Below, piece after piece: positions 1 to 54,180 of a stretch of DNA of 64,000 nucleotides (positions within the stretch are counted from its first letter, which is position 1; every line of letters starts with the position of its first letter). Below the pieces are notes generated by a model. It did no database searches and was not told where the DNA came from. It saw only the letters and a list, made by a program, of their open reading frames with translations. The translations under genes and the position numbers were made by a program. Source of the DNA: Macrostomum lignano (lineage: Eukaryota); NCBI GenBank assembly GCA_002269645.1, contig NIVC01001515.1, positions 124,001 to 188,000 of the forward strand, written 5' to 3'.

Positions 1-1981
1 GGCCTGCAATCGGCTCCCGATTTTGCAAGCAACATCATATATAAAAATAAGATTCCGTGCTGCTGGCTGGTTGCGTAGATAATACTTTAGGCAATATTCA
101 GCATAGGCGAGACGCTCGCCATTTGACCGAATATCAGCACAAGCACCAATAAAATTGTGACGGCAGCTGATAGCGAAGAAACCGTGGATATCGAGTCCAG
201 CTCTGCCGCCACGTACCAAGTCACCAGCATGAAAATTAGAACAAGCATCGTTTGTCTGGTTACTGGAAGCATCTGTTGATCTATTTTCCGGTACATGGAC
301 AAACGGAGCTGGCAAAACTCCGTTAGATGGTAGAACGTCCTGTTTATTGCCGGCAGAGCTCTTGCGCCGAAGACCAAAAATGCCGTCAGCTGCTAGAATA
401 GTAGGACGCTCGGTGCACTCCTAAACAATTAGAACCGTGGCGATTTTTACGACTAATGCAGATACGTTGCATAATAACATTTTTGCTAATTCAACAAACA
501 AATGCGGTCGCTTTTTAGGACATTTAAAAAATAAAGTGCCCCGAACTTTTCTCAATTCTGCCTGTACAACTATAAAAAACAAGAAAGTGTAAAATAATTA
601 TTATACTTACACTGTTTGGACACAGCATGCAATTCGTCGGCCAAAAAGTGACATCCAGAATTAACTGACGGTAGCGCTGCATAGTGCCATGACGATAAAA
701 GGATTGATAGAGGTTGTTAAAATTCTGAAAATAGCAACATGTGAGTCATTAAACAAGTATTTAACCTTTGTTGTGACAATTTTTTTATTCATTCTAAGCC
801 TAACAAGGCTTCATTCGAAAGTTTCCTCTATTTACGTATTAAGGAAAAAGGAAAGTCATGGACAGTATGCTCAGCTTACGTACCGTTAGCTGGGCCCTTG
901 AAAATGTCCCAGAGAGCAGAATCGTCCGGAGAGCTTTCCATAACGACAATGTCCCTTCGCACATTAGACTGTCGATAAGTTCAAGCAATCTAATGTCCAC
1001 GAAAGAGACAGGATCCTGTTTGCTGATTGGGAAGTAGCCCTGCTTCAGGAGACTATCCGTCGAGCAGTTCGCACAGAGGGCAAAGTCAGCAGAGATTTCT
1101 GCAAAAGTCGAAAAAGTGTAAAAACACATCTCATGCAGAAAGAATGCATATTAAAGTACACTATAGGTTGAGAAGAGTTATATTCTTTTATTTCACGTGT
1201 AATATTACGTAAAGAATCTGATTCTGAACATCACCGAAAAATTATAGCAACTCTTACCCCCATGCTCGTCAATAAGCGAAATGGCGAAAGTGTGCCCAGC
1301 TACAGTCGACTCTGAGCAACAAGTCATCTTGGGCCTCGTTGGAGCTGCTTCGGTTGAAAACAAATTGCCCTAAGAGTTGAAAGGTAAAGAATTTACATTA
1401 CTTTGTGAGGGCACCAAATTTTCATTAATTTGATGAGCTGGCCTTAATATTCAATTATGGGAATGTAAGATATAAAATTAGAGTACTTAAAAATTGTGAT
1501 ACAAAATATAAAAGGAGTAAATTACATTCCACTCCAGGAATCGATGCGGAAGGAATTGACCATGTGACAACTCTTTGCAATCCGAGCAAAATTGGACTCT
1601 GCAGTTGCAGCAAAAAAATGTGGCGAAGTTGCATCGGCATCTAATACACATGGACTGCAGAAAGAAATACTTGAAGTTCAACGAATATGTCACAGGATTC
1701 TCCGAGATGTCCCAGGGGATGGTCGACGCCACTGTTGACTCTAGATCTTCTGACGAGTGTACTTCTGACGATGATGATGGAAATATATAATCAGCACCTT
1801 CGCCACGAACACCACTACCACGATCGCCTCCTCCTCTGCCACGAGCACCTCTACAAGGAGCGCCACCGCCATGAGCACCTCCGCGAGAAGCGCCACCGCC
1901 ACGAGCACTGTAGCAAATATAATGGTGAGTGCCTTCACCTCGGACCCCTCTGACATAAAGTTTCACGGCGTGCCTCCTCAT
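1..1981 (-). mobile_element. Spliced KDZ (Kyakuja-Dileera-Zisupton) transposase gene, 3'-truncated by the window edge; exons ~1981-1526, 1369-1258, 1098-884, 676-611, 420-<1
   Basis: Phase-consistent GT-AG joins give 423 open codons. Order: RGG-rich N-terminus; Cys/His cluster (CIRCRC..FCCNC..CSDC..H..HRFLEWN/GNLF); CxC-type segment (CANC..LLKQGYFP..P..LLELIDSL); CMLCP; then the 420-1 exon read manually as ..AADGIFGLRRKSSAG..CSNFHAG..LDIHGFFAISCRHNF..GERLAY..YDVAC. These match the DG, CxH, GE and YD(I/V)xC motifs I recognise from KDZ transposases. The first-exon start is approximate. Confidence 0.85.
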
Positions 1982-2092
1982 TTGAGACGATGCGCTCTGA
2001 AAGCTAAGTATGAAATATAATTTTATATTTACTCATATGGAATAGCTAGTTTTGCCATCGCATGACTAACTCCACAACTTGTATAAGCACGT

Positions 2093-5000
2093 GAGAGCAG
2101 GGTGTAGCTAAGGAGAGCAGGGGGTTGCTAGGGAGAGCAGGGTGTAGCTAAGGAGAGCAGGGGGTTTCTAGGGAGAGCAGGGTGTAGCTAAGGAGAGCAG
2201 GGGGTTGCTAAGGAGAGCAGGGTGTAGCTAAGGAGAGCAGGGGGTTGCTAGGGAGAGCAGGGTGTAGCTAAGGAGAGCAGGGGGTTGCTAGGGAGAGCAG
2301 GGTGTAGCTAAGGAGAGCAGGGGGTTGCTAAGGAGAGCAGGGTGTAGCTAAGGAGAGCAGGGGGTTGCTAGGGAGAGCAGGGTGTAGCTAAGGAGAGCAG
2401 GGGGTTGCTAGGGAGAGCAGGGTGTAGCTAAGGAGAGCAGGGGGTTTCTAGGGAGAGCAGGGTGTAGCTAAGGAGAGCAGGGGGTTGCTAGGGAGAGCAG
2501 GGTGTAGCTAAGGAGAGCAGGGTGTAGCTAAGGAGAGCAGGGTGTAGCTAAGGAGAGCAGGGGGTTTCTAGGGAGAACAGGGTGTAGCTAAGGAGAGCAG
2601 GGGGTTGCTAAGGAGAGCAGGGTGTAGCTAAGGAGAGCAGGGGGTTGCTAGGGAGAGCAGGGTGTAGCTAAGGAGAGCAGGGGGTTGCTAGGGAGAGCAG
2701 GGTGTAGCTAAGGAGAGCAGGGGGTTGCTAGGGAGAGCAGGGTGTAGCTAAGGAGAGCAGGGGGTTTCTAGGGAGAGCAGGGTGTAGCTAAGGAGAGCAG
2801 GGGGTTGCTAGGGAGAGCAGGGTGTAGCTAGGGAGAGCAGGGGGTTTCTAGGGAGAGCAGGGTGTAGCTAAGGAGAGCAGGGGGTTGCTAGGGAGATCAG
2901 GGTGTAGCTAAGGAGAGCAGGGGGTTGCTAGGGAGAGCAGGGTGTAGCTAAGGAGAGCAGGGTGTAGCTAAGGAGAGCAGGGGGTTGCTAGGGAGAACAG
3001 GGTGTAGCTAAGGAGAGCAGGGGGTTGCTAAGGAGAGCAGGGTGTAGCTAAGGAGAGCAGGGGGTTGCTAGGGAGAGCAGGGTGTAGCTAAAGAGAGCAG
3101 GGGGTTGCTAGGGAGAGCAGGGTGTAGCTAAGGAGAGCAGGGGGTTGCTAGGGAGAGCAGGGTGTAGCTAAGGAGAGCAGGGGGTTTCTAGGGAGAGCAG
3201 GGTGTAGCTAAGGAGAGCAGGGGGTTGCTAGGGAGAGCAGGGTGTAGCTAAGGAGAGCAGGGTGTAGCTAAGGAGAGCAGGGTGTAGCTAAGGAGAGCAG
3301 GGGGTTTCTAGGGAGAACAGGGTGTAGCTAAGGAGAGCAGGGGGTTGCTAAGGAGAGCAGGGTGTAGCTAAGGAGAGCAGGGGGTTGCTAGGGAGAGCAG
3401 GGTGTAGCTAAGGAGAGCAGGGGGTTGCTAGGGAGAGCAGGGTGTAGCTAAGGAGAGCAGGGGGTTGCTAGGGAGAGCAGGGTGTAGCTAAGGAGAGCAG
3501 GGGGTTTCTAGGGAGAGCAGGGTGTAGCTAAGGAGAGCAGGGGGTTGCTAGGGAGAGCAGGGTGTAGCTAAGGAGAGCAGGGGGTTTCTAGGGAGAGCAG
3601 GGTGTAGCTAAGGAGAGCAGGGGTTGCTAGGGAGATCAGGGTGTAGCTAAGGAGAGCAGGGGGTTGCTAGGAGAGCAGGGTGTAGCTAAGGAGAGCAGGG
3701 TGTAGCTAAGGAGAGCAGGGGGTTGCTAGGGAGAGCAGGGTGTAGCTAAGGAGAGCAGGGTGTAGCTAAGGAGAGCAGGGGGTTGCTAGGGAGAGCAGGA
3801 TGTAGCTAGGGAAAGCAGGGGGTTGCTAGGGAGAGCAGGGTGTAGCTAGGGAGAGCAGGGTGTAGCTAAGGAGAGCAGGGTGTAGCTAGGGAAAGCAGGA
3901 GGTTGCTAGGGAGAGCAGGGTGTAGCTAGGGAGAGCAGGGGGTTGCTAGGGAGAGCAGGGTATAGCTAGGGAAAGCAGGGGGTTGCTAGGGAGAGCAGGG
4001 TGTAGCTAGGGAGAGCAGGGTGTAGCTAAGGAGAGCAGGGGGTTGCTAAGGAGAGCAGGGTGTAGCTAAGGAGAGTAAGGTGTAGCTAAGGAGAGCAGGG
4101 GGTTGCTAGGGAGAGCAGGGTGTAGCTAAGGAGAGCAGGGGGTTGCTAGGGAGAGCAGGGTGTAGCTAAGGAGAGCTAGGTGTAGCTAAGGAGAGCAGGG
4201 GGTTGCTAGGGAGAGCAGGGTGTAGCTAAGGAGAGCAGGGGGTTGCTAGGGAGAGCAGGGTGTAGCTAAGGAGAGCAGGGTGTAGCTAAGGAGAGCAGGG
4301 GGTTGCTAGGGAGAGCAGGGTGTAGCTAAGGAGAGCAAGGTGTAGCTAAGGAGAGCAGGGGGTTGCTAGGGAGAGCAGGGTGTAGCTAAGGAGAGCAGGG
4401 GGTTGCTAGGGAGAGCAGGGTGTAGCTAAGGAGAGCAGGGGTTGCTAGGGAGAGCAGGGTGTAGCTAAGGAGAGCTAGGTGTAGCTAAGGAGAGCAGGGG
4501 TTGCTAGGAGAGCAGGGTGTAGCTAAGGAGAGCAGGGGTTTGCTAGGGAGAGCAGGGTGTAGCTAAGGAGAGCAGGGTGTAGCTAAGGAGAGCAGGGTGT
4601 AGCTAAGGAGAGCAGGGTGTAGCTAAGGAGAGCAGGGGGTTGCTAGGGAGAGCAGGATGTAGCTAGGGAAAGCAGGAGGTTGCTAGGGAGAGCAGGGTGT
4701 AGCTAGGGAGAGCAGGGGGTTGCTAGGGAGAGCAGGGTATAGCTAGGGAAAGCAGGGGGTTGCTAGGGAGAGCAGGGTGTAGCTAAGGAGAGCAGGGGGT
4801 TGCTAGGGAGAGCAGGGTGTAGCTAGGGAAAGCAGGGGGTTGCTAGGGAGAGCAGGGTGTAGCTAGGGAGAGCAGGGTGTAGCTAAGGAGAGCAGGGTGT
4901 AGCTAGGGAAAGCAGGAGGTTGCTAGGGAGAGCAGGGTGTAGCTAGGGAGAGCAGGGGGTTGCTAGAGAGAGCAGGGTATAGCTAGGGAAAGCAGGGGGT

Positions 5001-5560
5001 TGCTAGGGAGAGCAGGGTGTAGCTAAGGAGAGCAGGGGGTTGCTAAGGAGAGCAGGGTGTAGCTAAGGAGAGTAAGGTGTAGCTAAGGAGAGCAGGGGGT
5101 TGCTAAGGAGAGCAGGGTGTAGCTAAGGAGAGTAAGGTGTAGCTAAGGAGAGCAGGGGTTGCTAGGGAGAGCAGGGTGTAGCTAAGGAGAGCAGGGGTTG
5201 CTAGGAGAGCAGGGTGTAGCTAAGGAGAGCTAGGTGTAGCTAAGGAGAGCAGGGGTTGCTAGGGAGAGCAGGGTGTAGCTAAGGAGAGCAAGGGGGTTGC
5301 TAGGGAGAGCAGGGTGTAGCTAAGGAGAGTAGGGTGTAGCTAAGGAGAGCAGGGGGTTGCTAGGGAGAGCAGGGTGTAGCTAAGGAGAGCTAGGTGTAGC
5401 TAAGGAGAGCAGGGGGTTGCTAGGGAGAGCAGGGTGTAGCTAAGGAGAGCAGGGGGTTGCTAGGGAGAGCAGGGGGTTGCTAGGGAGAGCAGGGTTAGCT
5501 AAGCTAGGGAGAGCAAGGGGTAGCTAGGGCGAGCATTGTGTAGCTAGGCAGAGCTGGGAT
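2093..5560. repeat. ~3.4 kb G-rich minisatellite of 20-bp units (GGAGAGCAGGGTGTAGCTAA alternating with GGGAGAGCAGGGGGTTGCTA; 40-bp dimer)
   Basis: Directly visible tandem array that degenerates at ~5500-5660. Confidence 0.97.
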
Positions 5561-7645
5561 TAGCTAGAAGGAGCAGTGGATTAGATAGACAGCAAGGGAA
5601 TAAGAAGGGCAAGCTAGGGTAGGTTAGGTAGGGAAAGTAGAGAAGTAGCTAGGAATGCAACTAACAAGGGAAAGATAGTTGAATGATTAGGTTTGTTGCT
5701 AGTAGCCAGTGGCATGGACAAGATTTTTCTTTGGTTGGGGTAGTGGTCTAAGCTTTTGCTTTAGAATCAAATATTTGTCCTAGGTCTTATAGTCACAGAT
5801 GAGCTATTGTAGTGTTATTGTGCTAATTCAGTTTTATTTATATATATTAGTTAATTATAAACTAATAATTAATCTATTATCTAGACAATTTGTTTTAAAA
5901 AATAAAAAAAATTATTCTAATAACTAATATACTAGATGAAATATTTGTCTATCAATATAGTTAAGAAATACAGTTTATAGCATTATTAATTTCTACTGTT
6001 AGGAAAAAATACCTGGAAGCAAATCTACATCATATCTGTGCATGCAATTAGACTCTCAGTAGCTGAGTTAGGCCTTAATTAATACTATTTTCACAGCCTG
6101 TTTCTGTTAGTGATAAAGTTCATATAATTTAACGAGTTACCCTAATTAAAACTAGGCTATCCAGCTTTGCTTTAAACCCAGAATAGTTCTGTAGTAGCAA
6201 ATTATCAATATGCATAACTAACAAAGCTAATCTGTCTGTTAAAACATTTTTATGCCCCTAAGCAATACGAAGCAGGCGGAAAATATATAGAGTATAATAG
6301 CCTCGTGCAGAAAGAATAGGCCCTAAGTAACGAATGCTGACAAAAGCTCTCATACTTCATAGCCTTAAAGTCACGAAATGTATATGTGATATATTCAAAA
6401 TAATCAATTAAATAAGCTTGTTAATATTAATGCTACTATTGCTTTGTATAATTTGTCTGGATTTACTTTATATTGAAAAAATACTTTTTAAATTAAACAT
6501 GCGCAATTTTTTTTTCTAATAAAGCGGAGCGCAGTAACTTATTACTAGACGGGTATAAAGCGGAGCATAAAGCGCGCTGTAGTGCCGCCCAGGCGCCAGT
6601 TGTATCACGCTCTACTACCGTCTAGACGGTTGACTATAGGGTGTAACGAGAGTATTTCAGAACACAAACAGGCGCGACGTAAACAAAGTAAGCAGTTTAA
6701 CAAAATCCAGCCTAATATTTATTTAAAAAATATCTATTGCAATATTTACCTAATTTTTTTCAGATAAAAACTACTTTTACGGGTTTGTATAAAACATTTA
6801 TTTTTATAATACTTTATTTAGTTTCTGATTCTGCGTCCGTACAGTTCCGTAAAAGTAAAGATTAACAAATGGGTAGGAAATTTATTAAGAGGTGTATTTT
6901 GTGCTTTAAAAATGTTTTTTTGAGACCACTTAACGGAAATATAAAAAATTGTATAAAAAATTACCAATTGAAACAACAAATTTTTTTCTACATTTTCTGA
7001 CTCCCCAGTTTTGACTTTAACCGTATCACCTTTAAAATTTAGTGAGTAGGCCAACGAAATAGTACACATAAATAAAAATGTTTCGGTAAAAGCACAAGTG
7101 TTTGTAAAGCATAGCTTTTATTCGAAGCTCTTGTTGCTGTAGTGCTTACTAATAATATTTCGCTGAAAAAGTCATTGTTGTGTTATACATATAGTCATTT
7201 TGAATCTTTTTTCAATATAGCCTATTCGAGGAAACCAATTAACTGGCTTGGTTCCGCTGGCTGAAAGTGATTACGTACCAGTGATGTTTATGGCTTATGC
7301 CCTTGTCCACCTGTGTCTCCGTTTATTAACGTTTAGGCCCTAGTTTTATAAAGAATAAATCAACTACTTATTCTGAACTAAAAAAATATTGCTACAGCCC
7401 TATTTTTTATGTTTAGCACGTCAGACGTCACTAATATACTAGTATACTACTGTTTTAATTAGTTTAGAAATTATATTTCTAGGCTGATTGTTCGGCCTAA
7501 GTTGGTGATTCCGCTTTATTTAGATAAAATGGCTCGGTATAAATTTACACCTATGGAATTTAATTCGTGTGTTTGTAAATTTTAGTATTTTTGTAACTTT
7601 TACTTTAGTATATAGAAAACCGAAGTTCTGTTTCTACAACTGTGA

Positions 7646-21039
<13,394 letters not shown>

Positions 21040-26564: not shown

Positions 26565-54180
<27,616 letters not shown>

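Follow-up and report, generated by a model that had tools for sequence, protein, structure and literature searches.

The window analysed here comprises 64,000 nucleotides (nt) of Macrostomum lignano DNA (contig NIVC01001515.1 of the Mlig_3_7 assembly, GCA_002269645.1, positions 124,001 to 188,000 of the forward strand). Its left edge, from position 1981 down to position 1 on the minus strand, is occupied by the 5' 57% of an intact gene of eight exons, which codes for a transposase of 777 amino acids (aa). Judged by its sequence, the gene belongs to the Kyakuja-Dileera-Zisupton (KDZ) superfamily; its catalytic competence, its mobility and the limits of a corresponding element are what we infer from the evidence presented below. 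The full-length product is deposited as a protein encoded by the same contig (hereafter P0121). Locus L001, retrieved from this contig, matches window positions 1-12002 exactly in reverse complement and reaches 11.7 kb past the left edge of the window; the last 338 codons of P0121, which lie past the window on NIVC01001515.1, are found at L001 12003-13695.

In the translation of window positions 1-2100, frame 0 of the minus strand runs from 420 to 1 for 140 codons without a stop, and 20 out of 20,000 mononucleotide shuffles of this segment stayed open. The motifs DGIFGLRR, CSNFHAG, LDIHGFFAISCRH, GERLAY and YDVAC are all present in this frame exactly as quoted in the first-pass annotation, which had been made from the letters alone. 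The hydrophobic open reading frame (ORF) at 87-377 (-), considered misleading by the same annotation, does exist, in a frame different from that of the transposase. Splicing of the window part yields five exons joined across four in-phase GT-AG introns and a product of 1317 nt, or 439 stop-free codons, beginning with the ATG at 1981; the four phase-consistent introns postulated earlier were recovered, whereas the accompanying count of 423 codons has to be replaced by 439. The G+C content of the exons (42-52%) versus that of the introns (27-33%) follows the pattern expected for genuine introns. An exhaustive HMMER search showed that P0121 is 100% identical to all 439 spliced residues, and fitting of P0121 to L001 gave eight exons and seven GT-AG introns, the first four of which are the introns derived beforehand from the sequence alone. 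The full gene, with its 777 codons and 14 splice sites, contains zero lesions, in agreement with the earlier claim of an intron-containing KDZ transposase with an unbroken frame.

The GenBank annotation of Mlig_3_7 is a StringTie/TACO/de novo transcriptome product built from RNA-seq assemblies, from which transcripts overlapping repeat annotations were removed by a filter (PMC5730564). The splice junctions coincide with those of a GenBank model from this set, and the RNA-seq support that had been proposed as a check of them is in this sense indirect. The deposited coding sequence (CDS) of P0121 begins at 2002, 21 nt 5' of the ATG, and lacks a methionine, which would give it the look of a transcript-derived ORF. 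The description of the gene as hidden does not hold, as an annotation of the protein, including a precomputed KDZ domain, already existed. In addition, the same locus is mis-modelled in an older M. lignano assembly as P0227 (UniRef A0A1I8IPJ3), named 'CARD domain-containing protein'. The N-terminal 80 residues of P0227 stem from wrong frames of exons 1 and 3; its C-terminal 303 residues are genuine, 303 of 304 positions being identical to P0121 over the C-terminus, with the single difference located at the exon 6/7 junction.

The assignment to the KDZ superfamily is carried by the Pfam KDZ profile (PF18758, gathering score 26.6 bits). The part of exon 5 lying in the window is matched on its own with 52.9 bits (E = 5e-14), the whole in-window product with 49 bits (residues 307-437 on profile positions 4-132 of 217) and full-length P0121 with 124.7 bits, the alignment then covering profile positions 4-217 of 217. 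The RGG-rich, Cys/His-cluster and CxC-like exons announced by the first-pass annotation are likewise present (see the table). However, while the KDZ model passes with the spliced protein, the two cysteine-cluster models stay below their cut-offs of ~27 bits (19.4-20.6 bits for CxC1, 18.9-19.7 bits for CxC2), and the profiles support the term CxC-like only weakly, although cysteines C205, C208, C300 and C303 of P0121 share columns with homologues that pass both CxC1 and CxC2, such as P0129 of Priapulus. In this protein, as well as in the fungal homologue P0228, which passes too, the cysteine cluster is followed by the KDZ core in the order seen in P0121. CxC7 was found neither in the in-window product (E <= 1) nor in the full 777-aa protein (E <= 0.01).

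The Cys/His cluster of exon 1 resembles a B-box, although the zf-B_box score of the in-window product (17.2 bits) is below the cut-off of 24.1 bits and a PDB sequence search returned only a weak B-box match to PML (E 0.15). Its Cys/His columns are kept in 87-96% of the homologues, and the M. lignano paralogues bear the UniRef label 'B box-type domain-containing'. The RGG-rich N-terminus consists in part of a 30-nt in-frame tandem repeat at 1838-1908 (-), with 2.4 copies and 85% match, which is a coding minisatellite expansion; the paralogues are devoid of it and have an AT-hook-like RGRPR instead. Read in this way, the protein appears to begin with a disordered RGG-rich region, followed by a zinc cluster resembling a B-box and by a cysteine cluster of the CxC type, which presumably recognises DNA or chromatin; the DDE core, RNase H-like by prediction, comes next, and a long helical region forms the C-terminal part.

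For the analysis of conserved residues, P0121 was aligned first with 18 and later with 62 homologues, the larger alignment being used for column conservation. Of its columns, 39 are conserved at >= 80%, and in 36 of these P0121 agrees with the consensus. Among the residues kept are D318 (DGIFG), C392-R-H394, G407-E408, Y434-D435 (YDVAC), H465, H469, C473-Q474, D489-G490-E491 and E494-R495, as well as the Cys/His positions in the N-terminal clusters. The non-consensus columns number three, of which two are artefactual: one reflects the start methionine missing from the deposited model, and the other is a gap that the fast alignment places next to C300; in the alignment with 18 homologues, both cysteines of the C300-C303 pair are aligned. 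The sole real deviation is W497N, at a position occupied by tryptophan in 93% of the relatives. In the numbering of P0121, the putative acidic DDE triad would be formed by D318, D435 and E491/E494; only the first two of these acidic residues are visible inside the window, the glutamate being encoded beyond position 1.

The AlphaFold2 (AF2) model of the whole protein reached a predicted local distance difference test score (pLDDT) of 73.5 and a predicted template modelling score (pTM) of 0.69, with residues 1-115 disordered, and the core-only model a pLDDT of 82 and a pTM of 0.84. In the predicted core the order of elements is beta1-beta2-beta3-alpha1-beta4-alpha2-beta5-alpha; D318 is part of beta1, D435 follows beta4 immediately and E491 opens the next long helix, as in DDE enzymes of the RNase H-like type. 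With Foldseek, no significant neighbour was retrieved from the PDB for the whole model or for the core alone (best E for the core 0.16), RNase H-fold proteins being found only among the weak matches of the core. The RNase H-like fold is therefore a predicted one, based on model topology and family literature rather than on a structural match.

Features of the KDZ gene, its 5' flank and the neighbouring host genes, in window coordinates
Feature	Position	Strand	Remarks
Exon 1, from ATG	1526..1981	-	152 codons; donor gtaatt at 1525
RGG/RG-rich low-complexity N-terminus	1796..1906	-	aa 26-62; pLDDT < 50 in AF2 model
B-box-like Cys/His zinc cluster	1541..1654	-	aa 110-147, CxxC..CxxC..CxxC..H..H
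Intron 1	1370..1525	-	156 nt, GT-AG, phase 0
Exon 2	1258..1369	-	112 nt
CxC-like cluster and 'GYFP' motif	926-1327	-	aa 167-247, exons 2 and 3
Intron 2	1099..1257	-	159 nt, GT-AG, phase 1
Exon 3	884..1098	-	215 nt
Intron 3	725..883	-	159 nt, GT-AG, phase 0
Exon 4	611..724	-	114 nt; ends in conserved C..C (CMLCP) just ahead of the catalytic core
Intron 4	421..610	-	190 nt, GT-AG, phase 0
Exon 5, first 420 nt	1..420	-	504 nt in full, continues past window edge; N-terminal 60% of KDZ domain
Exon 5 motifs	first D at codon 387-385, second D at codon 36-34	-	DGIFG (first D), CRH, GER, YDVAC (second D)
Short 5' flank or leader	1982..2092	-	TATAAAA at 2027-2021, ~20 nt 5' of deposited model start
40-nt minisatellite	2093..5566	.	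~87 copies; adjoins gene 5' end
ACAP-like ArfGAP gene	~7646-19781	+	N-terminal exon 7646, ArfGap exon ~18100-18325, ankyrin repeats 19140-19781
Diacylglycerol kinase gene	~38375-41031	-	DAGK_cat exon 39727-40221, C1-like exon 40519-41031

The exhaustive HMMER search, performed against 1.84 billion representative proteins, returned 96 matches at E <= 1e-3, with P0121 at the top. The closest relatives, P0122 (BOX15_Mlig004599) and P0123 (Mlig001681), show 35-36% identity (E ~1e-60) and are members of M. lignano families with multiple copies, whose locus tags go up to g29 and g20. With only 35% of the amino acids identical, the synonymous sites are saturated, so that dN/dS against the paralogues would not be meaningful. 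The remoter relatives share 20-31% identity and are uncharacterised, most of them having 800-950 aa; they come from Priapulus, Patiria, Branchiostoma, Apostichopus, Tubulanus, Lytechinus and a catfish, and a like taxonomic spread has been reported for Zisupton-like genes in a study of Pristionchus (PMC9297572). M. lignano itself harbours many distinct KDZ lineages. When the full spliced product served as query, a word-indexed homologue search gave no match, probably because the RGG low-complexity stretch flooded the candidate list; when the RGG region was left out, three proteins were obtained, namely P0121, P0227 from the same locus and a fungal KDZ protein. No second KDZ copy was found inside the 64-kb window, and a comparison with the phage collection yielded no match either, as is to be expected for eukaryotic DNA.

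The two multi-copy families represented by P0122 and P0123 are 47% identical to each other and were inspected outside the window at loci L002-L006 (contigs NIVC01001944, 000910, 002504, 003192 and 001431). In each of them the transposase gene is followed downstream, at 0.7-2 kb, by a SET-domain gene (PF00856) and preceded upstream, at a distance of a few kb, by an array of a homologous 159-nt satellite, ~80% identical between the families. Within one family, the copies are > 99% identical over > 10 kb. No terminal inverted repeats (TIRs) were detected for this unit within the fetched DNA, its right end being outside. By analogy, the unit may represent a large KDZ transposon with a histone-methyltransferase-like passenger. 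One copy carries a 3.3-kb insertion (L002 5330-8659), which is absent in L003 and L005; the 6-bp overlap at its junction may be the target-site duplication (TSD) of another mobile element.

On its 5' side, the KDZ gene of the window is separated by 111 nt, counted from the ATG, from a minisatellite with 92% match, which is composed of two alternating 20-nt half-units and displays a strong G/C strand skew of 0.62-0.64. The TATAAAA motif of the intervening flank could possibly be a core promoter. Beyond the minisatellite follows the ACAP-like ArfGAP gene, which is divergent, on the opposite strand and 5.6 kb off, so that the KDZ gene is situated upstream of it; the 40-nt minisatellite, 3.5 kb long, and AT-rich DNA make up the space between the two. 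No gene was called within 10 kb downstream of the KDZ gene. Two features unrelated to it are found 3-6 kb downstream, one being an element bounded by 200-nt inverted repeats, 96% complementary and 1.5 kb apart (L001 16928-18860), the other a nested palindrome of ~870 nt (L001 19196-20066). A short interspersed repeat occurs in three copies (window 10794-11014, which equals L001 989-1209; L001 14106-14361; L001 23291-23559), 83-93% identical and in both orientations, one of which lies ~410 nt past the KDZ stop codon. The repeat contains a tRNA-like GGGGTTCGATTCCCGAC box and is probably a tRNA-derived short interspersed element (SINE) or a miniature inverted-repeat transposable element (MITE).

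In the rest of the window, the product of the ACAP-like gene is annotated with 972 aa and matches BAR_3, PH and ArfGap; a diacylglycerol kinase gene is present as well. Tandem arrays account, by a rough sum, for about one third of the 64 kb (46 rows of Tandem Repeats Finder, periods 4-136 nt; for example 16708-18059, 29600-32379, 44110-48442 and 52161-53184), and many of them lie inside introns of host genes, where they produce long spurious ORFs. Such an abundance is in agreement with the simple/tandem repeat content of 15% reported for M. lignano (PMC5730564). No Rfam family or tRNA was found in the window.

As to the nature of the gene, the reading to which we incline, by a modest preference, is that it encodes the transposase of a KDZ DNA transposon, solitary and low in copy number. 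An enzyme of this kind would act by cut-and-paste, binding the ends of the element; metal ions held by the acidic triad would bring about the cleavage, and the element would then be reintegrated. The reading is favoured by the richness of the genome in KDZ lineages and by the sister lineages, which are repeated, with copies > 99% identical across > 10 kb. In addition, the G+C content at third codon positions (GC3) of the window gene (0.48) is near that of the repeated paralogues (0.42) and far from the values of four neighbouring host ORFs (0.55-0.77), which counts for a transposon as well.

Several observations weigh against a transposon. At the level of annotated proteins, the 90% cluster of P0121 has one member from one contig, rather than several near-identical copies at separate sites, and this despite the redundancy of the assembly, in which 180 Mb of duplicated non-repeat blocks have been reported (PMC5730564). 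No annotated protein was found to be 50-99% identical to P0121. Extension of the contig to the left, suggested by the first-pass annotation as a way to the missing parts of the element, did supply the remaining catalytic residues, but no TIR or TSD was identified: within 10 kb on either side there is no flanking inverted-repeat pair, only chance matches of 10-11 nt, short TIRs not being recognisable from one single copy. Moreover, no SET-domain partner resides near the window gene, unlike in both sister families, and its seven introns, six of them private, compare with two in the multi-copy P0122 family. The fact that the model passed the repeat-overlap filter of the annotation is a weak point only, since the multi-copy P0122 family passed too.

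The same observations are those which speak for a domesticated KDZ transposase, that is, a former transposon gene now present in Macrostomum as a fixed host gene in single copy, with its ends lost. The single annotated copy in a redundant assembly, the origin of the model from an RNA-seq-built annotation set past the repeat filter, the failure to find TIRs within 10 kb on either side, the missing SET partner, in contrast to the mobile sister families, and the six private introns all fit this explanation, as do the intact frame of 777 codons with all catalytic columns kept and the ordinary divergent intergenic setting next to the ACAP-like ArfGAP gene, with its TATA-like motif. On the other hand, no orthologue of > 50% identity was found in other species among the 5.8-15 billion proteins, in which the coverage of Macrostomum is uncertain, and the codon composition is element-like and unlike that of the neighbouring host genes. 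Single intact copies are common among low-copy transposon families, which is a prior rather than a test and counts against domestication too; the retention of the DDE triad carries no information either way. Domestication seems possible, yet the less probable of the two, and it is just as tentatively that one may suppose a DNA-binding and nuclease core kept working for a host function.

It is rather improbable that the gene is a stranded relic, i.e. a transposon copy without one or both ends, still transcribed, evolving neutrally and with lesions not yet accrued; the suggestion that the ends were lost, for example, through the 3.5-kb minisatellite adjoining the 5' side is no more probable. The failure to find TIRs, the satellite array beginning so close to the ATG, the replacement of a near-invariant residue (W497N) and the coding tandem-repeat expansion at the N-terminus would all be in line with such an origin. 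However, 777 codons and 14 splice sites are free of lesions while the closest relative is only ~36% identical, which means that the gene has either resided there for long under constraint or arrived only very recently. Finally, a chance open frame or a mis-spliced artefact without a real gene, for which nothing speaks but the truncation of the frame at the window edge, is ruled out by the KDZ match of the last exon alone, by the 96 homologues and by the identity of the spliced product to the deposited gene model.

Neither the evidence for a transposon nor that for domestication is decisive, and the balance leans towards a solitary or low-copy copy of an element in preference to domestication or a relic. 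The biological gain is small, as this protein was already deposited with a KDZ call, and as both the multi-exon structure of KDZ/Zisupton genes and their wide distribution in marine invertebrates are known; what the analysis does show is that a reading made without tools is able to recover a spliced transposase gene from raw sequence. Of more interest could be the contrast, within one genome, of a single-copy KDZ gene with seven introns and multi-copy sister families linked to SET genes, a pair which would be well suited to the question of what turns one transposase lineage into a cargo-carrying element and another into a host gene. It is conceivable, albeit doubtful at present, that the window gene encodes a nuclease and DNA-binding protein retained by the host and derived from the same stock as the SET-carrying mobile families; if true, this would be the first KDZ domestication described in a flatworm.

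In comparison with its sister families, the window gene shares with P0122 and P0123 the genome and the succession of B-box-like cluster, CxC cluster, KDZ core and helical C-terminus, and with P0122 also intron 1, which falls in the same alignment column and has the same phase. The differences lie in the many copies > 99% identical, the two introns and the AT-hook-like RGRPR N-terminus of these families, and in their downstream SET-domain gene and conserved upstream 159-nt satellite.

KDZ transposases were reportedly defined by Iyer et al. in 2014 as the Kyakuja-Dileera-Zisupton group with N-terminal CxC1/CxC2 clusters. Such transposases and their N-terminal clusters have also been reviewed (PMC12730594). 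P0121 is like them in its full-length profile match, in the D, CRH, GE, YD..C, H..H..CQ and DGE..ER motifs and in the position of the cysteine cluster, N-terminal to the core as in fungal P0228 and Priapulus P0129. It is unlike them in its CxC1/CxC2 scores below the Pfam cut-offs, in W497N and in the RGG-rich N-terminus, which is private to P0121. Fungal KDZ elements have a TET/JBP partner, whereas the window gene is without one. The KDZ+SET unit of the sister families, however, can be likened to the fungal KDZ-TET/JBP elements, and its SET association, if the unit is truly mobile, would be a parallel to them as a transposon-borne chromatin modifier.

Zisupton elements are said to have been described in fish by Bohne et al. 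in 2012. Zisupton-like genes are also present in Pristionchus, with relatives in lancelets, echinoderms and other marine invertebrates (PMC9297572), that is, in the same taxa as the matches of P0121. The window gene resembles Zisupton in its KDZ catalytic domain and in being a multi-exon transposase gene that looks like an ordinary host gene. However, Zisupton proteins are reported to have 1000-1400 aa, with 18-31 exons in Pristionchus, the platyfish protein bears a C-terminal CxC7 cluster (PMC12062965), and the elements possess TIRs and 8-bp TSDs (PMC12730594, PMC12062965), whereas the window gene encodes 777 aa (as against > 1000, or even > 1300, aa) in eight exons, has no CxC7 match and no TIR or TSD identified, so that it can be placed in the KDZ superfamily but not, so far, in Zisupton sensu stricto, and the designation Zisupton-type of the first-pass annotation goes too far in that narrow sense. 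Meanwhile, Zisupton-derived genes exist in vertebrates (PMC3424704), with HMGXB3 as a putative domesticated relative according to the first-pass annotation, and these provide a precedent for the conversion of a KDZ/Zisupton transposase into a single-copy host gene.

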